Source: Phaeosaccion multiseriatum (taxonomy: Eukaryota; Protista; Ochrophyta, other classes). Taken from it: a DNA stretch of 64,000 nucleotides. How positions within the stretch are numbered: the stretch's first letter is position 1; each line of letters opens with the position of its first letter. Positions 5,781 to 28,600 of the stretch are shown here, in pieces. Below the pieces are notes generated by a model. It ran no database searches. It was not told the origin of the DNA and saw nothing but the letters and a program-made list of their open reading frames with translations. The stretch lies in assembly GCA_965112735.1 (NCBI GenBank), contig OZ218964.1, forward strand, positions 2,232,001-2,296,000. Direction: 5' to 3'. The position numbers were made by a program, and so were the translations under genes.

Positions 5781-6002
5781 TAAGCTCAGCAGATTGTGGG
5801 CAAATTGGGTGCTTTGCACATTCGGGTGAATACAAGCAATACCATATCCATTGCAAGCCGCGTCGGGCTCGAGCGAAGGCAGGGGCTTCGAGCTCGATCT
5901 GGACAGGTGAGGTGGGCGACGAGCGCAGCAGAGGAGCAAGGCCTCCAAGACCTCCAGAGAGAGAGAGGGAGCGCTCTGCTGGTTTGCGCTTGATTGTTGG
6001 TG

Positions 6003-6043
<41 letters not shown>

Positions 6044-6732
6044 CTTTCTTGCTTGCCTGGTAGAGTCGCTGCGCTTCGTGAGAAGAGAAAGGAGAGCAAA
6101 AGCGAGCGACAAAGAGAGAGACAGAGAGAGAGCAAAGAGAAAGCAGAGAGCGCAAGAGAGAGAGGGTCGTTTGAATCGCTCGACCCGCCCCCAGCACGCT
6201 TGACCTGATCCCCTTTCCTCTGCTCGCTACCCATATGCCCCTCCCCCCATCTACTGCCATCCCGCCTCAGCATCCTTCTCGACGGAGAGAAGGAGGACGC
6301 CTTCTGGGACGGCTTGGCGGTGGAGGGCTTGGCGGTGGAGGCACAGGTTTCCGAGGCTGCACGGATGCACATCTGGAGCACTCACAGCAGTGTCAGCCCT
6401 CAGAGACGAGCAGCGCTGCTGCCCCTCTCATGGCCGCTTCCCACGCAGTTTCTTCTGCTGCATCATCCCCCCGGGAGAGCTCTGCTGCGTCCCCCCGGGG
6501 CCTGCAGCGGCCTCAGCTTTCTCCTCCGCCGCCGGGTATCAGTTTCCCTATCGGGCCCAGGGGGGCACCCGCAGCGGTACCCCCCCCCCCCCCCGGGGGC
6601 GCAGTAGTCAATCGCCATTCGCCTGTCGATAGTCGTGGCTTGGCGGCCCCAGGGGTGGAGGGCGGCGGCGAGGAGTGGGAGAGAACATGCAGTGAATCCT
6701 CACAACCCCTCCCCATCGGAGGCATAACGTAA

Positions 6733-6861
6733 CGGGTATTACCCACGTATACTCTCTGCTACCAGGCGTTACGGGCGTTGCGGGCTTTACCCATCTATAC
6801 TCTCTGCTACCAGGTAGTATAACATATCGGGTATTACCCATCTATGCTCTCTGCTTTCAGG
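6733..6861. repeat. Three 34-bp direct repeats separated by unique 14- and 13-bp spacers
   Basis: Consensus CGGGTATTACCCATCTATACTCTCTGCTACCAGG at 6733-6766, 6781-6814 and 6828-6861; internal dyad GGGTA-T-TACCC in copies 1 and 3. Confidence 0.8.
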
Positions 6862-7279
6862 CAGAACATAACGTTGCAGTCAGATAAGCTGCTGAGGGAG
6901 ACTTCTAGGTATAGGGAGAAGGGACGCCAAGTTCTGTGGTAAAGAGTGAGTGATATTCTTTTATCGCCTGATGAGGGTTTCCGTCCTGATATCACTCCAC
7001 AACTCCTTGACCAACAACAGCTGGCTCCTCCCGCTCCTGCTGTGGATCACCAACGCGCCCCCTCCGAACCACCCGTCGCTCCCGCCCCTGAGCCGCAGCG
7101 TCGTACCTCACAGCGCCTCTTCTTCCCGTCTCTCAAGCCTCACACGCTGCTCCTCGGCAACTTCTCTGTGATCGTCTGGAGGCCTCGGCAGAGGAGGATG
7201 TGGACGACGAACAGGAGGAGCAGCCGGGATGTCCTCCTCATCACCCGTGTACAGCCAAACACGGTTCCCATGCACCCAT

Positions 7280-7515: not shown

Positions 7516-8331
7516 CTACTGAATCTCGCTGACTCTGTCTGTCAAGTCTTCCACAACGTGACTCACGTCCACCCGGCGCGAAGGCAACCTCAACCCCCTG
7601 CCCAGCATGCACTCAAGCGGGAGAAGAGGCTCCTGACCATTCAACAAGGCTAACGGGGCCATGCCCAGGAGCCGCGTCGGGCTCCAGCGAAAGCAGAAGA
7701 GCGCCTGAGGCAAAACCACTTGTCATCACGCTGGTGCTCTGCAGCGAAGGAGGAAAGGAAGCGCACCAAAGTACCATTCGCCCGCTCCGTCAGACCGTTA
7801 CTCTCCGAATAGTATGGGGTTGTGAAGCGTTTGTCGATATTCAGCTGTTGAGTGACGACTCCGAGGAGACGGCTCCGAAACTCCGGCCCGCTGTCCGCGA
7901 GCAAAACACGAGGACAGCCATGACGCGGGAGTATCTCCCTTACCAGAAGCTCCGCAATCACCTCCGCTGTGTGCTGCTTCACTGCAAAGGCCTCCAGCCA
8001 CCGTTTCACTTTCCCTGACCACCATACACTTGTTGCCTTCGCTCCTCCGTGAGCGAGAGGTCCACCACGTCTACCCCCTCATCCCGAATCTCAACATCCC
8101 CTCCGTCGGTGAGGATACCCACAGCCTGGTGCAACCGCTTCCGACGGCAACGATGACATTGAGCTCACTACCTTTGGCAATCGGCCGCCTTCGGAGCTGC
8201 TGGGGCACCACCGTTTGGTCATCAGTCCTCACATGCCGACGCTGCTGAAGGCGAAGAGCTGAGTGAAACAAGGTTCCATCCACCACGTAGTAGCCCGCTC
8301 CTTTCGCCTTCACAAGCTCGATTCGCTCCAC
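7516..8331 (-). pseudogene. Degenerate Gypsy/Ginger-type DDE integrase (rve) relic
   Basis: Three fragments read in different frames: YYVVDGTLFH...DQTVVPQQLRRR (pre-zinc-finger region); RWLEAFAVKQHTAEVIAELL...RHGCPRVLLADSGPEF...TTPYYSESNGLTERANGTL (core with second D and E); and, after a frameshift, LPQALFCFRWSP...GMAPLALLNGQEPLLPLE. The HHCC finger and first catalytic D are not recognisable. Confidence 0.85.
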
Positions 8332-8467
8332 CTACGTGAGGCCCTGCGGAGCACTCTATCCTTCTCCCACAGCTGCAGAAAGCGCAGCATTCGACTGCAC
8401 CATGCATCGGCCCTCTGAGCTGTCTTTACCTCCTCCACCACGAAATACAAGAAGAGATACTACTCAG

Positions 8468-11400
8468 ATGTCTAGCGTCCTCCAAGAGCAGCGTATTATA
8501 CTCAAAGCCCTCTTTGACGCCACGAGCGGATCCGCTTGGTCTAACAAGGTTGGATGGAACACTTTTTGGGAGTATTGGTTCGGATTGAGCCTGGAAAATG
8601 ACTTTGTGGTGAAGATTGACCTCACAAACAACGGCCTCAGAGGTGAGAGAGGTGTGCTTATGGTTGTTGCGCCCTACGTTCTGAAGAGTATTTAACATAC
8701 AAGTACTCGAAGTCTTTCCAGAGTGTTCGAAGAAAATTGTGAGGGAGCGGCATGACGCGTTCGCGTCCCTTTTACTTGATATTAGTATGACGAAAGAACT
8801 TCCCTCCGCTCCGCAGGGAGCATTCCGCCGCAGCTTGGACAGCTTTCGAACCTTCGAAAGCTTTGGCTCCCAGAGAACGATCTAGAAGGTAATTCCCTTC
8901 CCCTTTCCCCTTTCCCTTCATATCAGTATGACCAGAGAACTCACTCCGCTTCGCAGGGAACATTCCACCAGAGCTTGGGCGTCTGCACAACCTGGCCGTG
9001 CTGAACCTGGAGTCCAACAACCTCAGCGGTGAGTGGTACGCACACCCGTTCGCATCCCTTTCACTTGATAGTCGTATGAAAAAGACCTTCCCTGCGCTCC
9101 GCAGGGAGCATTCCAAGGGAGCTTGGAAGTCTGGAGAAGCTTGAGGATTTGGACCTTTCCAACAACGAGCTCACTGGTGAGTGGTACGCGTACCCCTTCG
9201 CGTCCCTTTCACTTGATATGAGTATGATCAAAGAACTTCCCCCCGCTCTGCAGGGATCATTCCACCCGAGCTTGGAAGTCTTCAGAACCTTGAGAGACTA
9301 CGCCTCGGCCGTAATAAACTCACTGGTGAGTGGTACGCGAACCCGTTCGCGTCCCTTTGACACGTTTGTGTCTAACCCAACATCTCCCCTCCTCCCTTAG
9401 GGCCCTTTCCCGCTGCCCTCATCGGGCGATTGCAAATCAGGTTCGCGGATTACAGTTTCCGTGGTAACAGCCTCAGTCTCCCAGAAGACATCAACACCCA
9501 GACCGATCTGACCAAGCTCAATTTGTCGTTTCACACCCTTGTAGGTAGGTGGTACGCACACCCGTTCGCGTCCCTTTCACTTGATATTAGTGTGGCTGAA
9601 GAACTTTCCCCACATCTCAGGAAACATTCCGCCGCAACTTGGAGAGCTTTCGAACCTTCGAGAACTTCAGCTCAACAAGAACAGTCTAGAAGGTAGTGGG
9701 TACGCACACCCGTTCGCGTCCCTTTCACTTGATGTTAGTGTGACCAAAGAACTTTCCTCCCATCCGCAGGGAACATTCCACCCGAGCTTGGAGGGCTTCA
9801 GAACCTTGAGAATCTACACCTCCACAGCAACAAGCTCACTGGTAAGTGGTACGCACACCCGTTCGCATCCCCTTGACCTGATATTAGTATGGCTGAAGAA
9901 CTATCCCACATCTCAGGGAACATTCCGCCGCAACTTGGACAGCTTTCGAACCTTCGAGAACTTCACCTCTTCTACAACAAGCTCACTGGTAAGTGGTACG
10001 CACACCCGTTCGCGTCCCTTTCACTTGATGTTAGTGTGACCAAAGAACTTTCCCCACATCTCAGGGAACATTCCGCCGCAACTTGGAGAGCTTTCGAACC
10101 TTCGAGAACTTCACCTCTCCAACAACAAGCTCACTGGTAAGTGGTATATATATATATATATATATATCCCCTTGACCTGATATTAGTTATGGCTGAAGAA
10201 CTTTCCCCACATCTCAGGGAGCATTCCGCCGCAATTTGGAGACCTTTCGCACCTTCGAGAACTTTGGCTCAGCGGGAACAATCTAGAAGGTAGGTGGTAC
10301 GTGTGCCCGTTCGCGTGTACCCGTTCGCGTCGCTTTAATCTGATATTAGTGTGATAAAAGAGCTTTGTCTTGCTTCGCAGGGCCCATTCCCAATGAGTTG
10401 GGGCAGCTGACCAACTTGATGCAGCTGGACCTCTCCAACAACGACCTCAGTGGTAAGTGCCCGTTTAGGTGCTTTCAAATTGCTGACAAGCGTGTGTGAG
10501 TAAAGATGCTGCATCGCTCTGGACCTCCCCCAACAAGTTTCAAGGCCAGCTCCGTGGCACAAAGTGACGCGTCTGTTGACAAGCTACTTCCGCTCGTTCT
10601 TTTTTGATCTAAGCATCGTCCTCGCTCCTCTCTTCCTACCATGTTATAGGCTTTCCCGCCGAAGTGGCTGAGGGACTGTCTGAGCCCGAAGTCTCTTTGG
10701 CTGGGTACCCCTGGGTGCATCCTCCTGCGGCTTATGTTTGCTTGGGCCTTGGAGCGATACGGGCCTACTTCCGGGATATTGCAGCTGGGAGCTCCCGCTC
10801 GCCTTTCTTGAAATTGGTTCTGCTTGGCCAACCGCTCGCTGGAAAGACCCTGACGGTGAAGCGCCTAATAGGGGAGACAGTCGAGGAGCTGTCCCAAGAA
10901 GGAGACCATCATTGCCCGCGAACGGTGGGAATCAACATGATACCATCTTGGACGCCAGATTGCGGATATCCCTTGGACGTGACAATCTTGGACTTTGCGG
11001 GACAGGAGGACTACTTTCCTTTCCACCAGCTGTTCCTGACGTCACAGGCGTTGTACTTGCTTGTGGTAAACTTGCACGCGTTCAGTCAAGATTCGCCCGG
11101 CTTCAGTGAGTATGACCACATGTATAGGTGGTTAGACGCACTGGATTTCAGAGCACCCGACAGTACCATTATTGTGGTGGGGTCTCATCTTGACCTCTTG
11201 GAGGCAGAAAAGGCAAGGGAAGTCTTGTGTACGGTTGTGGACCGCATTCAAAGTCACCTGGAGAAGTGCGGCCATCGTCCCTCTCCGAGTGAGAACCGCG
11301 ACCCCACTGGCTCTTCTGGAAGTGGCGCACGTTCGTTGCGCGTAGCGGGCAAGTGTGCAGTGAGCACTGTAAGCGGTATCGGCTTCGAGGCCTTGAGACA

Positions 11401-13693
11401 AATTCTTTTTGACGTGGCCAGACCGAAGGACGGTTACACGGAGGAAGGAGAGAATGTGCTCGTTGGTCCTGGAGAGTACTGCGGCACCGTGGGGGTGGAC
11501 GTTCCGACGAACTACCTGAGGGCATACAACGCGATGACTGCAGTCCGAGAGGGATGTGGCATTGAAGCCGCAGAGCGCTCAGCGAGCAGTCTTGAGCCCT
11601 GCTCTCCCGCAAGCAGCGAAGATACTCGTGTGCTCTATTTGAAGAAGGAGGATGCACTACATAGATGGCGGCAAGCTTGCCAGAAGCATGAGGGGGAGTG
11701 GAATTTGACCGGGCACTTCGATGAAGTGCTCTACAGTGCACTAGAGTTCTTCTCCTTGTCTGGCAAAATGCTCGTCACCCCGCGTCTCATCCATTTGGAT
11801 CCGTCGTTACTGAACGAGCTGCTACGGCGGCTGGCTGACCACAACGTCTGCATGTCTGATGAGCTTACGAAGGAAGTCAGAGCCTGGGCACAAGGAAGGA
11901 ACGGTGGGGATACCATCCAGCTACAAGAAGACCATGAGAGATTCTGCTCGTGGGGGGAGGTGACCGATGAGTACTTGCACTTCTTGTGGCAGAGAAAGTG
12001 CTCGGATGGCGGGGGGGAAGTGCCTAAGATGAGCCAGGAGGGCAAGGAGCGCTGGGAGGGCACGGAGCTCTTCAAGCGAATGGTCGACGCGATGATTGTG
12101 AACAATGCCTTGATTCCCGTGGTGCGGAGGAAGGCGCCGGGAGACGGGAGAAGGAACACCTACGTCGCCCCTGTTCGCCTCCCGCCTATGGTGAGTGCAG
12201 ACGAGTTGACGAACCTCCCGTTCTTCAACTTGTCCAGTGGTGAAGCCATTGACCAAAAAAGGCTCTTGTTAGAGACTGGACATGACTTTCTGCCTATAGG
12301 CTTTCTGGACCAGTGCATCTCAGCAGTTGTGGGAGAGATGCGAGCCGAGGTCCAGCGGATTTGGAGGGGTGGCATCTGGCTCAAGCTTGGCCCCAATGAT
12401 GGCACTTTTTGCTGCGATGCAGACCTGCTTCTGTTGGAGACTCGACCACAAAGCTGCGGTGCTGGAGTTCTACTTGCGGTCAAGTCCATGAACCACTTCA
12501 CCAACAGCTACATTAGCGTGGCTTGGGAAGGGATGCGCAAGGTTCTAAAGGAGACCGTGTTCTATGACCGATACTCGTTCATCCTAGGCGACGCGAGCAA
12601 GACTGTGCACAACATTGCGGATGACCTTGAGCGGCACGTGGTGAGAGGTGTGAGTGAGGTAACGTCCGCGCTGACCGCGCTGGCCTATGAGATGGGCCAG
12701 TTGAAGAGTTCACTCTCGAGCGGAGTGACGGCTCAGTTAGGGGAATTGCTCGGGAAATTGGAAGCCCTTCACTGGCGTGAGGAGGGAAGGCTACAGCGAA
12801 TGTTGCTCGACCGCCGGGACGTGGAGAAGCTGATGGCGGAGCTTCGAAGTATGAAAAGGCTGATGCTTGACGAATTCTCTGCCCAAGGCCAACTCTTGCA
12901 GGACCTGTCACAGGAGGGCGAGGGGAAGGACAACGAGGAGAGCGAGGATGAAGGGAGTAAGAGGCTTGCTGCGACGATCCGACTCGCTGAAGACGTCGAA
13001 GACGTTTACAGCCTTGTAGTGGGGCTTCACAAGCCTTTCAGCTACCCAGATATGGTGGTGCTGCTGCCCCTGTGGGACTTTGCGGAGCAGGGGGGCGGGC
13101 TAAGCGACGATGAGAGGAAGGAGGAGGGGTGGAAGACACGATTAGATGCTAGCCCAACGAAGAAGGACTGGAAGGGAACAAAGGAGTACAGGCTGTTCAT
13201 CCGCTGTGCTTTTGACAACACTCTCGTTCCTTCCGGCATCAAGGAGCAAGGATATCCCATCATACTGGAGCGGCAAAAGCACAAGGTGGTCGTGAAGATG
13301 GGCAAAGCTTTACTGTTTGCTGCGAGTGTGGCTGTTACTGCTCCGGCACTAATGGTAGGGGGTTCGCTGCTGGCCGGTCTACTTCTGGGTACTCTTCGAG
13401 AGGTTGGGTCCGGCATAAAGGACCAAGGGTGCAAAGGGGTCGATGCTCTCCGGCGGGGTCAGAATGAGGGCGCCGTTCACACGAAGATCATGGCCGGGAG
13501 CGGTACCGTACGTGCCTTACTAGAGCAGCTGGAGGCGGAGCTGGAGGCGATCAGCACAGACGACGTGTCTTTTGTTAGTTTTAAGGGTAAGATGCAGAGG
13601 TTCGTGAAGGGCGCCCACGCCACGGCAGTATGGGTGCTGAACGAAAATGCCGCCGAGTTTGAGCGGAAGTACCCAGACTGGAGGAAGGTATGA
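8468..13693 (+). CDS. LRR-Roc-COR (ROCO family LRR-GTPase), 13 exons, 1360 aa, no kinase domain; candidate immune receptor
   Basis: Exons 8468-8642 (LRR N-cap, LKALFDATSGSAW..W...W), 8817-8888, 8957-9028, 9105-9176, 9254-9325, 9401-9544, 9621-9692, 9770-9841, 9917-9988, 10065-10136, 10218-10289, 10381-10452 and 10650-13693. All introns are GT-AG phase 1 and the exons join into one open frame of 4083 nt. Roc motifs: KLVLLGQPLAGKT, RTVGI, LDFAGQEDY..HQLFLT, VVGSHLD. Confidence 0.92.
8757..10452 (+). repeat. Tandem exon+intron cassette array (~148-bp period) encoding the LRRs
   Basis: Ten 72-bp exons (GxIPxxLGxLxxLxxLxLxxNxLx) and one 144-bp exon, separated by 68-91-bp introns sharing GTRAGTGGTACGCACACCCGTTCGCGTCCCTTTCACTTGATRTTAGTRTG...AAGAACTT...CAG. 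Confidence 0.95.
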
Positions 13694-15130: not shown

Positions 15131-18100
15131 TCATCTTTCCCCACCCTCCCTGAGCAGCTGCAGACGCTTGAGGGCGGCCTTGGCCTGCTCATGCGCCCCG
15201 TCGAAGCTGTACACCCCGACGGCAGAAACCTTTATGCTCTTGCTGAGAGCCTTTCCCAGCCGACGCCTGCAGGAGGAGGAGGAGGAGGAGGAGAGCGGGG
15301 TGGGGATAAGGAAGGTTGAGGGCGATTTCGAGTGAGAGCATTTCTCGGTCTCATGGATGGATCAGGATCATGGCATCCCCCACAAGCAGCACTTGGGCCT
15401 GTGGGACTCCCAACCCCTCCCCCCCCCTTCCTCCCCTACGGCAAGCACTCACTTGCTGAGGGCGAAGGCGGTGGGGATGCCCATCTCTTTCGCGCTGAGG
15501 ATGATCTCCGCCACCTACAGGCCAGTGCAGGGTTTGCAGTTGGTGGTACAGAAAGGCATGTGGTAAGGCAGTTGGTCAGTTAGGGCGGGCCAGTGAGCTA
15601 ACCATCGCCAGTTGGAGGAGTGTATGTGGTGTGTGGGCAGAGAGAGACAGAAGGAGAAGGGGCTGTGCATTGATTCGTCGCACCTTCTCGTCCACAGGGG
15701 CCAACTCGCCCGCCTTCGAAGGAGTTGAAGGAGGGGCGCCAGAAGGGCCATTCTCCCCCTTTGAAGGAGGGGCACCAGTAGGGCTCAGCTCCACTTCAGC
15801 ACCGCCGGGCAACAGCGGGGAAGGTGTTGGTGGTAGTCTCGCGCTCTCACCCACATTCGGAGCGACGATCAGGAGCTTGACCTGACACCAGAGCAGTTGG
15901 TGATACAGAGCAGAGTGAACTAAGAGAGGTTTGGTAATGAATTGGCAGGCCGGAAAGGACTGAGGCGCGAGGATGAGACGTTGAGCCCCATGCGCCGCCC
16001 CGCCCCGTGTGCGCGTTTGCGCATGTATTTGTGTGTGTGTGTGTGTGTGGGTGCGTGTGCGTGTGCGCGTCTGTGTATGTATGTCAGTGCTTGTATGCGT
16101 CTGTCTCTGTGTGAGTGGCGCTTCAGTGACTTCCTCTTCCTCCCTGTCAGTGACTTACTCTTCCCGCTTGTACGCCCCTGAGCACCTCTCTCAGACCGAA
16201 CACGAGACGCCGCCGAGCCTTAGCCTTGAGGGGCTCTCGCAGACGCTGCCGCTCCTGGAAGCGGAACAGCTCGGAGAGCATGCCCTTGACGAAACCGTCG
16301 AGCGTTTCGTCCAAGGGGTGCGCTCCGAAGGCGGCGAGGTGCGGGGAGGGGCCCTGGCAGGGGGGGGGGCGGGGCAGGGCATGCAGGGCCCTTGGAACAA
16401 GCAATGGGGGAAAGGGGGGCGTAGGGATGGATGGATCGATAGATGGGTGGGTGGATGGATGGATGGATGGATGGATAGATGGATGGATGGATAGATTGAT
16501 AGATGGATGGATGCATGGATGGATGAATAGATGGATGGATGGATGGATGGATGCATGGATGGATGGATGGATGGATGGTTGGATGGTGGATGGATGGATG
16601 GATGGATGGATGGATGGATGGATGGATGGATGGATGGATGGATGGATGCATGGATGGATGGATGGATGAATGGATGGATGGATGAATGGACGGATGGATG
16701 AATGGACGGATGGATAGATTTATGGACGGATAGAGAGATCGATAGATAGACAAGGGAGAGAGGACAGAGAGGACAGAGGAGGAAGGGTCAGGATTGGGTC
16801 TGACGGTCAGGCTGAGCATGAATTGCGCCCCGCACTTAACATCCACATCGACTCATCGACACGATATCGGCATCATCGACATTGATATCGACATCATCGA
16901 CATTGATATCGGCACCATGACATTGATATCGGCATCATCCACTCTTGCCCCTACCCTATATAACTAAAAAAAAACAATACCCAATACCCACTACCCAATA
17001 CCCAATACCCAATACCCAATACCTGTATTTGGGGGCCACCTCCACGAGAGAGGAGGGTGTGAGGGGGGCCTTGAGCCTGCTCCGGGGGGGGGCTGCTGAC
17101 TCTGATTGGGCCCCAGACACCCACTCGTGCAGGCGCTGCAGAGTCTGCCGATTATTGTTCTGAGGCGCCGAGTACCAAAAAGGCAAACGAAAGAGAAGCA
17201 TTTTTTGTGATTCGGAGGAGAGGACAAGATGGGGAGTGCGAGGGGGGGGTAGGGAGAAGACATGAGGGGGAGAGGGCTCAGCGAAGGCGAGAGAAGGGAA
17301 GGTGGAAGGGAGGGGAGAAGGCGGGGGTTGCTCACTGGGGAAGCTCACTGGGGTAGTTCATTCATTCACTTCAGTCATGAACACAATCTCTCGCGCGCTC
17401 ACTCTCCGACATACTCAACTCACTCACTCACTCACTCACTCACGCACGTACTCACTCACTCACTCACTCGCGCGCTCACTCCCTCAACTCACTCACTCAC
17501 TCACTCACTCGTTCACTCACTCACTCACTGACTCACTCACTCACTCACTCACTCACTCACTCACTTACTCACTTACTCACTCACGTTCTTGCTGGCCCTG
17601 GCCTTCTCGAAGGCTTGCTCCGCGTTCCACTGCTGCTGGGGTTGCGCCTCTCCCCCTGGGGAACCGGCCTCACCCCCCAGGGTACCTTCCACGGTTTCAG
17701 TTCCAGCTGCCGCGCCCGCACCCCCCCCCTCCCTTGCTACCTCAGCAGTTGGTGGTACGGCATCTCCTCGCCCCTCGGTGTCCAAGGTGTCCAAGGTGTC
17801 CAAGGTGTCCAAGGCGGGGAAGTGATGGCAGTGGATGGTCCTCCCCCCGACCCTCCTCCCCTCCAGCCCTTGCACCGCCGCCTCTGCCTCCTCCAAGGAG
17901 CCGTACAACACAGTCACCGTCACCGTCGCATCCCCATCCCCGTCTGGCGCCGCCGTATCACCAACTGCTGACGCATCTCCTCCTCCTTCTCCCCCTCCTA
18001 TGCGCCGCTCCGCTTTTCTGGGCACCCTAAGGTCCCTCACCACCCCGAACTTTGCCGCCATTTCTGTAACGTCTGAAACGACTTCTTCGTACTCGTCGTC

Positions 18101-19266
18101 GTCGCACACCTCGGACTCCGACACGAGGTTGTGCAGCACCACAGCGAAGGTCAAGGCCTCATCTCCCCCCCCCTCTTGCTGCCTCGCTTCATATTGACCA
18201 CTGCTACTGCTACCACTACTTGTGCCGTTGCGGTTTCCGTCCTGCCCCTGCCCGTTCCCCTGCCCCTGCCCATATGCCTTGACCAGCCTCCAGGTGGCCC
18301 TGACAGTCTGCCCAGCGACTCTCCTCCCCTCGAAACCGCGCACCGCGGCCTCGGCCTCCGCAGCAAGGCCGTACACAACCGTCACCTCCAGCCCCTCCTC
18401 TTCGCTCCCTTCGTCCCCCGCCCCTTCCCCTCCCCTTCCCTCTCCCTCTCCCCCTCCTCCTCCCTTCCCCCTCGGAATGACCCTGCTCAGCACGTGCCCG
18501 TACTGCTCCGCCATGTCCTCCACATCCCTGCACACCTCTTCGTACTCCTCCTCCTCCTCCACGTCCTCCTCGCACACGAGATGCAAAAGCGACACAACAT
18601 GGTGCTGTATCACCAACTGCTTCCCCCCCCCCTCCCCCTCCCCCTCCTCCTCCTCGACTCGGAGACAGTTCGCCTGCTTACCCTCCACCACCCTCCCCGA
18701 GAAGCCCTTCACCGCTGCCCGCGCCCCCTCCTCCTCCGCATACCGCACCTCTACTTCAATCCCTCGCTCTTGCACTTGCACTTGCACTTGCACTTGCTGG
18801 GAGCATTGTCCTTCTTCCTCTCCCCCTCCTCCTTTGCCCACGCAACGGGGGACGTGCACACAGTCGATTTGTCCAAAGCGCTCCGCCATTTCTGTAACGT
18901 CCTTGACGACTTCTTCGTACTCATCATCGTCCACAACGTCCTCCTCCTCCACAAGGTGCAACAGACGCACCACCCGTCCTACAGCAGTTGGTGATACAGC
19001 AGCAGTTGGTGATACAAGACCAGGCCCTGCAGAGGCGCCTCCTCCGTCCTTCTCGCCACCAACATGCTGCGATCCGGGCAGGGGGAGGGGAGCCCCCGGG
19101 GTGGGGGTTGGCTCTCCAGGGGGGTGCGCCGCTACTCGTAGCTCCCCCGGCGGTCGGCCCAAGAGGGCCTCCCACTTGGCTTCTCTGTCGAGGAATATCC
19201 TCTTCCAAGATAAGAGGATAAAGACAGGACGGGAGAGGGGAGGGGGGGGCGTAGCTATGAGTAAAG

Positions 19267-19302
<36 letters not shown>

Positions 19303-21459
19303 GTGTGTGTGGGAAGAGAGGCGCCGTGAGCACCGTTCGGCTCTCTGCGGAGGGAGCGCCACCGTACTGCTCTGCACTGCACTTGGCCATCATCAGAGCT
19401 TCCTTCAGCTTCCTTCGGGGAGAGGGATTGGACGCCACACACACGCACACACACACCACACACACGCACATACAGACACATGCACACGCATATACATTTA
19501 CACACAACACACACACACATACACACACACACCTTCTTGAGGCTTGAGAGTTTGCGCTTCTTGGGCCTGCCTGAGAAGGCGGCCTTGTCGTAGGCACGCA
19601 GCTGATGCACGGAGGGTGTGGGGGGGGATGGCGCTGGAGGGAGGGGGGGGGACGTCGCTGTGGCACGGACGGCAGACCGAACCTGCGGAATAGATACACA
19701 AACGTACACGCACGCACGCACACGTATGTCAGCGACAAGAGAGACAAGTAGCGAAACTCTTTGAGCCTTGGCGGTCCCCGAACTGGTGAAGTAAGAACAT
19801 CTACAGCCTTCCTGAGGCTCCCCGCCCTCCGATTCATATCGCCATCCTTATAGCCGGTCAAGCTACGTCACTCACCGTAAGCTGCTGCTGCTGTACCACC
19901 AACTCCTGCAGCTGCACCTCGTGCTTCTGCTTCTGCTTCTGCTTCTGCTCCTGTTCCTGCTTCCGACTCGGGTCCTTGACCTTGTCTGCCTGCTTCTTTT
20001 CCCGTTGTTGTAGCTCCTTTCTCTTGTCGCACTCCGTCTTCCAGTCTGGCGAGCGTACCACCACTACTCTCTCCCCTCCTGCTCCCCCTGCCCCCCCTGC
20101 TCTTCCCGCCTTCTCGCCCTCTCCTCCTGCACCGCTATGGGGATGATGACCGACAAGCGCTGGCCACGCCTTGTCATAGCCCTTCCTGTTGCCCCCAGTG
20201 AGCGGCTGCACCACCCCCTCCTGCTCCTCCTCCTCAATCTGTCGCTTCTTCTGCCCCTGCTGCAGCAGCTGCCTCGAAGTCAACTGCACCGCCAGCTCCC
20301 GCCGCTCCTGCTTTGGTTTCTTTCGCTGCTTTGGCTGGAGCCCTGACTGCTCCATTGGCTCCTCCCCCAGACCCTGTGACTCTAACTGCAGCCGTTGATG
20401 GTCCTGCTCCTCCTTCCGATGTTGCTTCGCCCTCCAGGGATCCAACTTCACCTCCAAGGGGTCCTGCCTTAGGTGGGGCCTCAACTGTCCCCCTACGTTC
20501 TCTGCTGCAGCCCTCCCTCCCCATACCCCTTTCCCTCCTCCTGAAGTCTCTCCGCTGCCAATACGAGCACCAGCACCAGCACCAACGCCAGCAGCAGTAG
20601 CACCAACGCCAGCAGCAGTAGCACCAGCAGCAGTAGCACCAGCAGCAGTAGCACCAGCAGCACCAGCAGCAGTAGCACCAGCAGCAGTAGCACCAGCAGC
20701 AGCAGTAGCAGTAGCACCAGCACCAGCAGCGGTAGCACCAGCAGTAGTAGCACCAACACCAGCAGCAGTAGCACCAGCAGCAGTAGTACCCCCTCCTGGG
20801 ATAAACGGCCTGGCCAAGATGCTGATGCCTTCTCTACTTGCGCTTCGTGTCCAGGGCGAAGGAGGAGCAGCCACGTGACCGACCAAGGCGCCAAGCGGTC
20901 TGGCCTCGAGCCCGAGAGGAACCGCAGCAGGGGCATCGCTTGGGGCTGGGGCAGGTCCAGCAGCGGCACCAGGTAATGCCTTTTCGTCGACTGGCGGCGG
21001 TCCGAGGGAGGGCCATTCAAGCCAACCACTCAGGAGGCCGGGAGTCAGCTCTGCATTTGGGCCTGTGCCACGTCCATGCTCGGATTCCTTCCTCCCTGTC
21101 GACAGGCCAGCAGCGGGGCCAACAGGCGGTCTCGGCCCTCCCACTGTCAGAGCTACTGCGGCTGCTGCTGCGGCGGTCTCATCTCCCCCCTCCCCTCCCC
21201 TCCCCCCGGCATTCCCTCCCTTCGTCCCACGTCCTCCCGAGAACTTCCCCCTCCCTCCAGCCCCACTTGGCCCCTCAGGCCGCGTGACACCTCCCCCCCT
21301 GCCCCCCCTGCCCCCCCTGCTGCTGCTCTTGGACCCTTGGCTTCCTCTCCCCCTCCCCCCCTCCCTGCCCCGCGACCCCCGCCCACCTCTATGGAATCCC
21401 CTACCTCTGCCGCGCTCTGTTCCTGCTGCTCCAACAAATAAAGTCACATTGTCGGCCAT
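15131..21459 (-). CDS. SECISBP2: SECIS-binding protein 2-like (SBP2) with three inserted U2AF65-like UHM/RRM domains, about 1371 aa
   Basis: Exons 21459-19876, 19682-19533, 19201-17585, 17159-17023, 16390-16159, 15881-15684, 15514-15453 and 15266-15131 join in frame (4116 nt). K-rich motif [19 protein letters not shown]; SBP2-type L7Ae domain [33 protein letters not shown]...VKLLIVAPN...[34 protein letters not shown]. Confidence 0.85.
16425..16732. repeat. (GGAT)n intronic microsatellite
   Basis: Visible tetranucleotide tract inside an SBP2 intron. Confidence 0.95.
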
Positions 21460-25653: not shown

Positions 25654-28600
25654 TCACGCATTGGGCCCTGCCTGCCCTCCTCCCCCGCCAGGCAGAGCGG
25701 CTCCCCCTACCCACAGCCCTTGACTCGTGGTGGCGGCCTGCCCAGAGAGCGTCACTCTGCCCTCCGCCTTCCTCAGCTCCGTGAGGACGAAGCCTCCACT
25801 AGCAGAGGCCTGGAACCCGACAAGAGACGTCCTGTGTGTGTGTGTGTGTGTGTGTTTGGGGGGAGGGGGGGGGGCACAGAAAGCGGGGCGGTCGCGGTGG
25901 AGGGGGGTGAGATGGAGGGGGGGAGAGGGGAAAGGAGGGGGGGGGGTGGGGGAAGGAGAGGATAGGAGAGGACAGAAGGGGAGGGGAGGGGAGGAGAGAA
26001 GGAGAGAGGAGGGGAGACGAGACGAGAGGGGAGGAGACGAGAGGAGAGGGGAAGAGACCCAGAGGCCTCTCCCGCTCTGTCCCCACCCCTCCTCTCTCTC
26101 TCCCTCCCTCGTTTCCTCCTCCCCACTCTCTCTAGTCCTGCCTCTCCTACCCCCCCACCCACCCACCCACCCACCTATCCACCCGCCCACCTGCCCACCC
26201 ACCTACCTACCCACCTGCCTAACTTGGCTGCCCAGTACGGACAGAGGCCGCAATGAGCCGATCCCGTCACCGGGTCCTCGTCGATGCCGAAGCGTGGGAA
26301 GAAGCAGCGGCTCAAGAAGTCCGCCCCTGTGCCCCTGCTGCTGCCGCTGTACGCCCCCCCTGCCTCCTCTGCACCCGCCCCCGAACCCCCTCCCTCACAG
26401 GTCACGACGATGCCCCGGCTCACCACCTTGCCCAGCACCCCAAACGACGGTTTCAATCCTCGCATAAACGAGTCTCTAGAGACGTGCACGAGCATATCGA
26501 GTCTGTTCCGCCCCGCGAAGAGGATGTCTTGCGCCTGCAGGCCCAGCCCAAGAGCAACGGTTTCCACGTCCTCGTGGCCGCTCGGAAGGGCCTCTCCCAC
26601 CTCTTCTGCGGGGAAGTCCAATTCGATCCACCACACCCCTTTCTCTCCCTCTTTCCCTTCCTCCTCCTCCTCCTCCTCCTCCTCCTGCTCCGCTTCTCCC
26701 TCCTCCTCCTCCTTCTCCTCTCCCCCCTCCTCCTCCGCCCTCCTCCTCCTCCTCCTCCGCCGCCGCCGCCTGCAGGTGAGCACACCGCTCAGTGTGTGGA
26801 AGCGAATCGACTGTGCCGATCCCACTCGCCCGCTCGTCCATAGAGCGTGGGCTGCAAACAGATGGCAACAGATGGCAGCAGATGGCAGTACGCACACGCA
26901 TACACACACACACACGCGGTAGAACATGGTGTCAGCAGGCAAGCGCTTGGTGTCAGGTCTCAGGTCAGCGCACCGTGGCGAGAAACGAATGCCCGTGTGA
27001 GCAAAGCATGTACTAAGTACTTGGTGTCAGCAAAGCATGTATTTGGTGTCAGCAAAGCATGTCCTTGGTGTCAGCAAACCATGTGCTTGGTGTCCATCAG
27101 GTTCCCAGGCACCGCACGTACCTGCGGCGAGCGTCGCGTGTCCACAGAGGTCCACCTCCGCAGCCGGCGTGAACCACCGCAGCCGATAGCTCTGACTACT
27201 GCTACTGTCACCACCACCACCGCCACTGCTGCTGCTGCTGCTGTGCTTTGCGAGCTCCTCATCGTCCTCCTGCAGGCCGGGCACGAGCAGCTGCAGGAAG
27301 GCAGTCTCACTGAGCTTCATCTCGGCAGCCACACGCTGCATCCAGCCGCTCTGGTCAGCGCTGGGTAGAGGCATATGGGGGGGGGGAGGGGTCCTTGAGG
27401 CACCCACCAGAGGGGAGGGCGGGGGAGGAGGATGTTGACATGTTCGGGCCGCCCTCCCCGTCCCTTCCCTTACGTATCCTTCCTCTCTAAAGATAAGGAG
27501 TCAGAATGCTTACGAATGCTTACATACCGTCCGCTCCTCTCACTGACTTACTCTAAGCGCTACTATCACGGACTGCTTGACTTGTCACTGACTTACGCGC
27601 TTGCGTGTCCGCTTCCATGGGAGAAGAAGACAGCCGCTTGGTTGCCCTCGAAAGCCCTCTGCGCGAAGGCGTCCACCTAGGCCCGACCAGGAGGAGGGTG
27701 GGACAAAGCGTGAGGGCGAGGATAAACGTGAGGGTGAGGATGAGGGCGAGGGTTAAGCGAAGGTTTAAGCGAGGGGCTTCAGTGTAAGCGAAGGGCTAAG
27801 TGAAGGGGAGGGCATCGACGTGTGACGGAGGCAGCTTCGACTTCTAACACACACACACGACAAACATACACAGAGAGAGACAGAGAGACCGAGACAGACA
27901 CCCCCCCCCCCCCCCCCGAAACATGGAGGTAGAAAGAGAGAGACAGAGAGTAGCGTTTGGTCAATGCGTACCTGCATCCACTCCAGCGCTCTTGGGGGCT
28001 GCTCGTGAAGCGACATCTTCATCTCAAACCAAGGGTCTCTGTCACGGATAACAAACCAGGGGTCAGTAAGTCAGGGAGGGAGGGAGGGAGGGTGACGGTG
28101 ACGGTGGGGGTGAGGGTGAGGGTGAGAGTGGGGGTGAGTGTGAGGGTGAGGGTGAAGGAGGGAGGGAGGGTGAAGCGGAGGGTGAGGGAGGGAGGGAGGG
28201 AGGGAGGGAGGGAGAGGGACGTACGGCACTTAGCGCGCGATGTGCCCGCACCGTACTGCACCCCCACCTCCTCGTCTCGTCGCGCCTTCCCATATGACTC
28301 TAATGTACCCTCTCCCGTACGCCTCTCGTTCCCCTCCCTCCCTCTCTCCCTCTCTCTCTCACACACTCTCTCTCCGTCCCTCTCCCTCTCTCTCTCTCTC
28401 TCCCTGCCTCGCTCCCTCCCTCTCCCTCCCTCCCTCCCTCCCTCCCATATGCCTCTAATGTAATGCGGGCACCCACCTGCCATGCACGACGGAGCTGAGG
28501 CCCACGAGTCGGAAGCCGCATTGGGCGTAAAAGCCCAACAAGGGGGCCTTGGCGATGAGTAGAATCCGGTCCAGCCCAGCCATCTGTGAACAAAGAGATG

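Follow-up and report, generated by a model that had tools for sequence, protein, structure and literature searches.

A transcribed LRR-Roc-COR gene of Phaeosaccion multiseriatum containing a tandemly repeated exon-intron unit

Introduction

Is an array of interchangeable leucine-rich repeat (LRR) exons, separated by short and nearly identical introns, a device for programmed receptor diversification or the product of ordinary repeat evolution in the germline? The question is raised by a locus within a stretch of 64,000 nucleotides from Phaeosaccion multiseriatum (GCA_965112735.1, contig OZ218964.1, positions 2,232,001 to 2,296,000, forward strand), hereafter the window. Two kinds of LRR genes illustrate the two possibilities. 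The VLR genes of lampreys and hagfishes are assembled somatically: a germline gene that is incomplete receives cassettes from its non-coding flanks by cytidine-deaminase-linked gene conversion. In the LRR regions of plant NLR genes and comparable repeats, unequal crossing-over and gene conversion place homogenised neutral parts beside diversified ligand-contact codons.

In brown algae and their relatives, the leading candidates for pathogen receptors are LRR-ROCO genes that devote one exon to each LRR, and the family as such has already been published. Exon shuffling and the 72-nt "type I LRR exon" have been in print for Ectocarpus since 2012, as has the hypothesis of cassette or somatic recombination, including the VLR analogy (Zambounis 2012, PMC3341825). 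A later study extended the work to four brown algae, reported positive selection and alternative splicing, and still calls somatic recombination unsupported (Teng 2024, PMC11378527). The original prediction for the present locus, made from the letters of the DNA, proposed that the introns act as recombination arms. Here we describe the gene, the genome-wide family of its 148-bp repeat unit, a compact parallel in Chrysoparadoxa, a comparison of intron with synonymous identity, and the mosaic histories of exons and introns, all of which are new.

Results

The locus is a transcribed and correctly spliced member of the LRR-ROCO family of the brown-alga type (Table 1). From the N-terminus onwards, the protein comprises a cap, 13 leucine-rich repeats, a Roc GTPase, a COR region, and, at its C-terminal end, a putative hydrophobic anchor, and its clean coding sequence of 4083 nt contains a single, terminal stop codon. 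Every intron of the gene is of the GT..AG type and splits a Gly codon after the first base, corresponding to phase 1 (the same intron phase is termed "phase 2", in the GFF sense, in Teng 2024, PMC11378527). Such introns flank all exons of the LRR array, namely ten of 72 nt, which fit the type I LRR exon pattern GxxPxxLxxxxxLxxLxLxxNxLx, and one fused exon of 144 nt. The array introns measure 68, 76, 77, 75, 76, 77, 75, 76, 81, and 91 bp in order. The exon lengths, the phase 1/1 symmetry, and the intron range of 68-91 bp, all anticipated from the sequence, were confirmed by the gene model together with RNA, and the layout of constant introns and variable exons is real. An assembly artefact was rejected because RNA confirms the splice sites and because parts of the array are matched perfectly by independent DNA contigs.

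Table 1. Coordinates of the LRR-ROCO gene and its parts in the window.
Feature	Position	Strand	Details
LRR-Roc-COR gene	8468-13693	+	13 exons, 1360 aa; gene model
Exon 1	8468-8642	+	ATG, N-terminal cap (LRRNT-like), first LRR; phase-1 end; gene model
Intron 1	8643-8816	+	174 bp; of the conserved intron family from 8757 on (last ~60 nt)
First sub-array	8817-9325	+	72-bp LRR exons 8817-8888, 8957-9028, 9105-9176, 9254-9325; introns of 68, 76, 77 bp
148-bp tandem units	8908-9358		3.0 copies; TRF
Intron 5	9326-9400	+	75 bp; 5' half family-type, 3' half diverged
144-bp exon	9401-9544	+	two irregular LRRs without intervening intron; gene model
148-bp tandem units	9543-10264		4.8 copies; TRF
Second sub-array	9545-10452	+	introns of 76, 77, 75, 76, 81, 91 bp alternating with six 72-bp LRR exons
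Exons of second sub-array	9621-9692, 9770-9841, 9917-9988, 10065-10136, 10218-10289, 10381-10452	+	gene model
Intron 12	10453-10649	+	197 bp; outside the intron family
Last exon	10650-13693	+	3044 bp; linker, Roc GTPase, COR, C-terminal region, stop codon
Roc GTPase domain	10811-11194	+	P-loop GQPLAGKT, switch II DFAGQE; Pfam PF08477
COR-like region	11195-12460	+	limits approximate; predicted-structure alignment
Hydrophobic C-terminal stretch	13301-13396	+	possible membrane anchor; Kyte-Doolittle 19-residue windows 1.7-1.9

The Roc domain was recognised by Pfam PF08477 (E 8.8e-12, 45.7 bits at a cut-off of 27) and by a match to the Roc domain of LRRK2 (E 8.5e-12), its best solved relatives being the Roc domains of LRRK2, LRRK1, M. 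barkeri, and C. tepidum. The Pfam models for COR and LRRNT found no match in the protein, and a COR invisible to Pfam has likewise been reported for brown-algal ROCOs (Teng 2024, PMC11378527). The AlphaFold model (pLDDT 61, pTM 0.67) aligns over about 470-684 columns with the Roc-COR structures of LRRK1 (E 6e-18), LRRK2, M. barkeri RocCORdC, and C. tepidum RocCOR (TM-scores of 0.67 by target for 4wnr and 0.54 for 3dpu), and only ROCO proteins stand at the top of the fold-search list. With moderate confidence, the predicted structure places a COR domain directly after Roc.

The nearest relatives are the ROCOs of Cladosiphon, Hapterophycus, Ectocarpus spp., Pylaiella, and Chrysoparadoxa. The Roc-COR identity to any brown-algal ROCO is only 30-36%, and the Roc-COR tree places the sequence on a long unresolved branch, with a ROCO of Ectocarpus fasciculatus giving the top identity (33%). 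Two protein libraries contained no identical or close protein. The hydrophobic C-terminal stretch matches the transmembrane-bearing ROCO group of Zambounis 2012 (PMC3341825). By analogy with these families, the protein is most likely a cytoplasmic sensor, possibly membrane-anchored, in which a ligand on the LRR arc would switch the Roc-COR GTPase. An immune role is suggested by the architecture and by the published argument.

The array is spliced in a single observed manner. In the RNA run X5, depth drops to zero over introns 5, 8, and 12. In one contig, the upstream LRR exons are followed by exon 13, with the junction exactly at 10649/10650. The depth pattern also fits the removal of intron 10. 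The sole assembled path is the constitutive one, from exon 10 through exon 11 to the last exon, as seen in contigs, in which minor isoforms are invisible. This result bears on the idea that the germline template is fixed and that most of the variety arises when interchangeable LRR exons are skipped in frame, the look-alike introns making splice-site choice flexible, as proposed by Teng 2024. The symmetric exons would preserve the reading frame after any skip, multiple isoforms have been reported for Ectocarpus ROCOs, and one RNA contig (8663-8844) retains the 3' part of intron 1 and is thus an unspliced or alternative 5' form. However, no exon-skipping joint at exon borders was found among the RNA contig joints shown, contigs being a form of data that hides minor isoforms. 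We consider splicing an unlikely main source of diversity, albeit one compatible with the explanation that we prefer below.

At the DNA level, one exon and its intron of ~76 bp form a 148-bp unit with the behaviour of a minisatellite that is spliced. As this length is not divisible by three, it is splicing that restores the reading frame. An open reading frame read through the exon-intron unit, used to look for paralogous arrays, had no match in a collection of 5.8 billion proteins. By k-mer depth, the unit belongs to a family whose members number a few hundred across the genome, where copy number is k-mer depth summed over short contigs of at least 90% likeness, with paralogous arrays counted jointly rather than read individually. 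In three DNA runs from one sample, word depth relative to single-copy sequence reached 126-511x at the intron positions and 514x in the exon framework, but only 3-41x in the hypervariable exon parts. Exon 1 lies at ~11-14x, which implies that other genes contain similar first exons, and the 144-bp exon is single copy in the genome (~1x).

Near-identical short introns occurring by the hundreds within a single genome could also suggest an introner-like element, in which introns spread by insertion and not by duplication of whole units. The intron core motif (seven matches at no more than three mismatches, against none expected) is, however, confined within the 64 kb to the LRR array and always occupies the identical codon position of the same repeat, and on these grounds the introner reading was rejected. 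Moreover, exon and intron repeat jointly as the 148-bp tandem unit, and the copy number of the exon framework is as high as that of the intron. A mobile intron is accordingly the least credible of all the explanations considered here.

The likeness of the introns is considerable yet uneven. Introns 9693-9769 and 9989-10064 share an exact run of 59 nt, precisely as first noted. The description of the introns as essentially free of microsatellites applies to most of them and fails for the two without the conserved core: (TA)11 replaces the core in intron 10, and intron 2 carries a CCCTTT-like run. The expectation that intron identity exceeds synonymous exon identity was not upheld, since the values of 0.72 for introns and 0.61 for strictly synonymous exon sites do not differ significantly (Mann-Whitney p 0.17). 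When different exon classes are compared, the likeness of the introns clearly exceeds that of the synonymous sites (e.g., 0.85 vs 5/9), so that the introns may have experienced some extra homogenisation or constraint.

This excess between classes could be taken as a sign of function, with selection keeping the core of ~35 nt as a hairpin controlling the splicing of micro-introns or as a source or target of small RNAs. The high genome-wide depth at intron positions, a small predicted ACGC/GCGT stem, and the reported Ectocarpus miRNAs against shuffled LRR exons would agree with such a role. Yet RNAalifold on eight introns gave a stem of only -4.2 kcal/mol without compensatory pairs, which we rejected as evidence of a hairpin or dyad signal. 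Microsatellites stand in place of the core in introns 2 and 10, of which intron 10 nevertheless appears to be spliced, judging from the RNA depth. The introns of Chrysoparadoxa share only splice sites with those of the window, and the Ectocarpus arrays work despite long and unlike introns. A functional intron core is thus a very doubtful explanation.

The exons tell a different part of the history. Exons 8 and 9 (9917-9988 and 10065-10136) differ at three nucleotides, all non-synonymous, in agreement with the original prediction, and another pair shows 10 non-synonymous and no synonymous differences. Within the closely related class A exons, pN/pS is ~1.5, a value from a small sample. The framework of this class is 91% identical and its synonymous sites are nearly unchanged, while its introns differ. 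The concave-face residues listed earlier for each exon were all correct, and, in line with the predicted excess of non-synonymous change at xxLxLxx, variation is concentrated at the xxLxLxxNx positions, most strongly at 13, 15, 17, and 18 (0-based), which are the positively selected sites 14, 16, 18, and 19 of Teng 2024 (PMC11378527).

Exon and intron histories are mosaic, the exons being the more alike within class A and the introns the more alike between classes. Unit 9 is a chimera of the unit 7 intron and the unit 8 exon (Fisher p 0.0009). Past recombination with break points inside introns is thus supported. Variant junctions in the three DNA runs of the one sample, as seen in Logan contigs, which drop rare variants, all have single-copy depth and foreign letters between their two sides, which marks them as paralogous loci and not as rearranged copies of this one. 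The locus contains no LRR exon that is inactivated or lies on the opposite strand.

Discussion

The locus resembles the Ectocarpus LRR-ROCO genes (PMC3341825) in its cap, LRR array, Roc, COR, and hydrophobic C-terminal segments, in having one LRR per 72-nt exon with identical consensus and exon borders, and in its hypervariable concave-face residues and evidence of exchange between units. The 72-bp in-phase LRR exons are also common to the four brown-algal ROCO sets of Teng 2024 (PMC11378527), a study that stresses alternative splicing and leaves intron sequence untreated. The introns set this locus apart: they are 68-91 bp long and near-identical, whereas those of an Ectocarpus sp. 6 gene (L001) are 344-485 bp long, unlike one another, and hold opposite-strand LRR exons. 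Owing to its short, near-identical introns, the array is a tandem repeat at the DNA level, and the locus thereby adds a compact form to the family.

Chrysoparadoxa shares this form. A ROCO gene of Chrysoparadoxa australica (P0002, L002, GCA_964200425.2) has at least nine 72-bp LRR exons and near-identical introns of 79-95 bp, arranged as a 164-bp unit in 9.4 copies. Its intron identity (0.79), exon identity, and four-fold-site identity (0.78) are all ~0.78, as expected of simple recent duplication, whereas the array of the window is more mosaic. The two intron consensus sequences are unrelated: their global alignment scored below most shuffles (443 of 500 reached the score). Homogenisation of intron sequence within a lineage, with replacement between lineages, speaks for ordinary concerted evolution rather than for a conserved recombination signal.

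We therefore regard germline unequal crossing-over and gene conversion, combined with diversifying selection, as the probable explanation. In the germline, units would be gained and traded through unequal crossing-over and through gene conversion of short tracts, both inside an array and from one array to another, and such exchange would keep introns and exon framework alike over the few hundred genomic copies. Diversifying selection would meanwhile hold the solvent-exposed residues of the LRR beta-strands different. The introns would be passive homologous tracts where an exchange can terminate harmlessly, rather than dedicated signals. Unequal crossing-over is here deduced from the pattern in one genome. 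Compared with the concerted evolution of plant NLR LRRs, the repeat unit of this array includes an intron, making each repeat a separate splice unit.

The more ambitious alternative is that the introns are cis-acting arms through which LRR exons are exchanged, deleted, or duplicated in a regulated and possibly somatic manner, generating an adaptive-like repertoire. Frame-neutral exchange of the symmetric phase-1 exons, exchanges that ended within introns, a genomic pool of a few hundred units, and identical intron runs as long as 59 nt would all suit such a system, and LRR modules as the unit of diversity together with a pool of donor cassettes recall the VLRs (PMC3341825). Nevertheless, the variant joints behave as fixed paralogues, the intron consensus is lineage-specific, its core is missing from two introns, neither structure nor dyad with covariation was detected, and intron identity does not significantly exceed synonymous identity. 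No recombinase is linked to the array, the sole enzyme remnant in its vicinity being a sub-threshold fragment of a retroelement-type integrase, and the literature does not report somatic recombinants. Unlike the VLR precursors, the germline gene is complete, spliced, and expressed, its RNA contig is spliced from genomic exons, and no somatic event was seen in the contigs. Programmed cassette recombination is hence highly improbable, and neither dedicated recombination arms nor somatic rearrangement find support here.

We assign an equally slim chance to the broader proposition that the homogenised short introns are the substrate of regulated cassette exchange, meiotic or somatic, in which a few hundred interchangeable exons of one LRR each would be shuffled among dozens of receptor genes. 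If true, a stramenopile alga would use intron homology to build an anticipatory receptor repertoire, and the novelty would lie in the demonstration and in the role of the introns. The compact arrays span only ~2 kb and can be covered by one long read or amplicon, which makes the somatic-recombination hypothesis easily testable in this organism.

Apart from the LRR-ROCO gene, the other open reading frames of the window matched nothing beyond a PhzF-like exon and, weakly, RRM and rve.

Gene structure and family

Reading of 8000-11500, combined with a scan for AG/GT-bounded 72-bp pieces translating to an LRR, gave a gene model of 13 exons on the forward strand; its 4083-nt coding sequence specifies 1360 amino acids. 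All introns are GT..AG and interrupt a glycine codon between the first and second base. Within the array their lengths are 68, 76, 77, 75, 76, 77, 75, 76, 81, and 91 bp, and TRF detected 148-bp tandem units in the array. Below, an intron takes the number of the LRR exon directly downstream of it, LRR exon 1 being 8817-8888, and the two form a unit.

Features of the ROCO locus and the rest of the window, with copy estimates (depth as a multiple of single-copy depth, run X1)
Feature	Position	Strand	Description	Depth
Exon 1	8468-8642	+	ATG, N-terminal cap, first LRR
LRR exons	after exon 1	+	ten, each exactly 72 bp
Long LRR exon	9401-9544	+	144 bp, within array
Last exon	10650-13693	+	single, 3044 bp, ends gene
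Hydrophobic stretch	13301-13396		near C-terminus
148-bp tandem units	8908-9358, 9543-10264
Intron positions	9196, 9592, 9734, 9759, 9990			126-511x
Exon framework start	9773			514x
Hypervariable exon parts	various			3-41x
First exon	8505, 8525			11-14x
144-bp exon	9440			about 1x
48-bp tandem repeat	6724-6864		3 copies, upstream of gene
(TGCC)10 run	6001-6041		upstream of gene
Integrase core relic	7650-8009	-	retroelement type, just upstream of gene
Long ORF	17573-19861	-	weak RRM_1 match (E 1.3e-5), acidic repeats
PhzF-like exon	26178-27026	-	PF02567, E 1.4e-13 over 40 residues

The feature is genuine and was accurately described in the original prediction: all ten concave-face strings quoted there and the 59-nt identical run shared by introns 7 and 9 were reproduced. 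The intron core, GGTACGCACACCCGTTCGCGTCCCTTTCA, has seven matches at up to three mismatches against zero expected, and none was found outside the array in the 64 kb. The introns had been called essentially free of microsatellites, which fails for two of them: a CCCTTT-like run replaces the core in intron 2 (8889-8956), and (TA)11 stands where it would be in intron 10 (10137-10217). Intron 11 carries a 14-nt core duplication (10300-10330). These natural variants suggest that the core is dispensable.

The last exon encodes a Roc domain (PF08477, E 8.8e-12); among solved structures, those most closely related to it are Roc domains from LRRK2, LRRK1, and bacterial and archaeal Roco proteins. The COR domain gave no Pfam match, and passages of PMC11378527 describe the same for brown-algal ROCOs. 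A structure model (pLDDT 61, pTM 0.67), for which 12 homologues had been aligned, was compared with the PDB using Foldseek; only ROCO proteins headed the list, aligned over 470-680 columns, far beyond the Roc domain alone (LRRK1, E 6e-18; M. barkeri RocCORdC, TM 0.67 by target; C. tepidum RocCOR, TM 0.54). Close to the C-terminus lies a hydrophobic stretch, consistent with the group of membrane-anchored ROCOs reported from Ectocarpus (PMC3341825).

The gene belongs to a published family, for which the diversification hypothesis has likewise been published. In Ectocarpus, each LRR is a 72-nt "type I LRR exon", GxxPxxLxxxxxLxxLxLxxNxLx (Zambounis 2012, PMC3341825). The structure was confirmed in four brown algae, with positive selection at LRR sites 14, 16, 18, and 19 and demonstrated alternative splicing (Teng 2024, PMC11378527); "phase 2" in that work is the exon GFF phase and equals intron phase 1 here. 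No identical or close protein was found in libraries of 5.8 billion proteins or 1.8 billion representatives. The best matches, 27-36% identical, are ROCOs of Cladosiphon, Hapterophycus, Ectocarpus spp., Pylaiella, and Chrysoparadoxa australica. In a Roc-COR tree, our sequence sits on a long branch and its placement is not settled. The source is therefore probably related to brown algae, with a proteome absent from these libraries.

Comparison with two relatives

The ROCO locus of Ectocarpus sp. 6 (L001) has 72-bp LRR exons but introns of 344-485 bp, which resemble each other by at most 0.52, and no tandem repeat was detectable in its array. Six intact-looking 72-bp LRR exons lie opposite to that gene (L001:9707-18289, minus strand), as described for E. 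siliculosus (PMC3341825); no LRR-like reading was found on the opposite strand of our locus. The locus of Chrysoparadoxa australica (L002:764-2290) is compact like ours: its array repeats a 164-bp unit 9.4 times, and every unit combines a 72-bp LRR exon with a near-identical intron of 79-95 bp. The intron consensus of Chrysoparadoxa, however, has nothing in common with ours beyond the splice sites. Intron sequence is not a subject of the intron-related passages of PMC3341825 and PMC11378527, and Chrysoparadoxa is not mentioned in the passages drawn from these papers, which treat Ectocarpus only and four brown algae, respectively.

Expression and splicing

Runs X1, X2, and X8 are genomic and come from one sample, whereas X5 belongs to a different study and shows the behaviour of RNA. 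Its depth is zero inside intron 12 and, in the bins with introns 5 and 8, no higher than their exon ends explain. A 2.4-kb X5 contig matches the last exon from 10649/10650 on and has 156 extra letters upstream, which correspond to LRR exons 11 and 10 together with 12 nt from exon 9 by arithmetic from depth bins rather than a printed alignment. This depth pattern and these contig joins show that the ROCO gene is transcribed and that its splicing follows the model, at least for the 3' junctions. Another X5 contig, 8663-8844, begins within intron 1 and extends into LRR exon 1, at a depth of 150 where the last exon has 508; intron retention or an internal start could account for it.

A genome-wide unit family with signs of selection

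Copy number was estimated by adding up the depth of every contig with at least 90% likeness. Single-copy word depth, set by a 3.4-kb contig spanning introns 11 and 12, was 89.5 (X1), 512 (X2), and 105 (X8). The pattern agrees among the three DNA runs of the one sample, and 1743 X1 contigs were placed on 3 kb. From the summed multiples and the contig count, the exon-intron unit is therefore a family of a few hundred copies over many genes, with constant introns and framework and variable ligand-face codons.

LRR exons 1, 6, 8, 9, and 10 form exon class A; over the 45-nt framework they are 91% identical and show hardly any synonymous change. The predicted excess of non-synonymous change at the concave face is supported in this class, in a small sample: pN/pS is about 1.5, and variability peaks at ligand-face residues. 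Between exons 6 and 10 there are 10 non-synonymous changes and 0 synonymous ones; for exons 8 and 9 the counts are 3 and 0, the latter pair exactly as originally reported. Variability is highest at residues 13, 15, 17, and 18 (0-based), which coincide with the sites on the concave beta-strand face already published as selected.

Mosaic history of the array

Intron identity had been expected to exceed synonymous identity. The array introns have a mean pairwise identity of 0.72 (67 columns, splice sites excluded), against 0.61 at third positions of nine codons whose amino acid never changes, a difference that is not significant (Mann-Whitney p 0.17). The comparison becomes significant only when every third position is counted (0.555, p 0.003), replacement changes included. 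The average conceals a mosaic among the units. Introns of class A units differ by 6-41%. When exon classes are compared, intron identity stands at 0.75-0.85, whereas the four-fold sites appear saturated (e.g. 1/9, 0/8, 5/9). Intron 7 is nearly identical to intron 9, and intron 8 groups with intron 10, yet exon 9 almost duplicates exon 8. The intron and exon of unit 9 have opposite affinities (mismatches to units 7 and 8, Fisher p 0.0009), with the switch point in the polypyrimidine tract of intron 9. The mosaic shows that exchanges of roughly exon size, ending inside introns, have happened.

Probable germline concerted evolution rather than a special signal

The original prediction saw the introns as recombination arms for possibly somatic diversification. 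We found no fold or covariation in the array introns, no conservation of their sequence across lineages, and no linked recombinase, so that nothing speaks for a dedicated signal. The compact, homogenised high-copy form, the different intron of Chrysoparadoxa, and the mosaic, which are our incremental additions to the published family, argue against the introns being a special recombination signal. Among the listed joints (83 in the DNA runs), depth is single-copy in all three runs and foreign letters lie between the sides; the joints are paralogous loci. They lend somatic change no support and, because assembler contigs cannot show rare variants, do not refute it either. Teng 2024 notes that neither somatic recombinants nor a recombinase had been reported (PMC11378527).

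The best-supported reading is that the array, a spliced tandem repeat, undergoes ordinary concerted evolution in the germline. Units would be spread and homogenised by unequal crossing-over and short conversion tracts, differences at ligand-contact codons would be preserved by selection, and the introns would serve as harmless homology in which exchanges can resolve. Germline concerted evolution would explain why introns are alike within a lineage and replaced between lineages, why the units form a mosaic, why two introns have lost the core, and why intron identity shows no significant excess over synonymous identity.

The sole enzyme relic nearby is the rve fragment of the integrase core (PF00665, E 3.6e-6; 27.6 bits, below the Pfam cut-off of 32.6), and nothing else of a transposon was seen near the gene. 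Also noted in the window were two short repeats upstream of the ROCO gene, a long ORF, and a PhzF-like exon.
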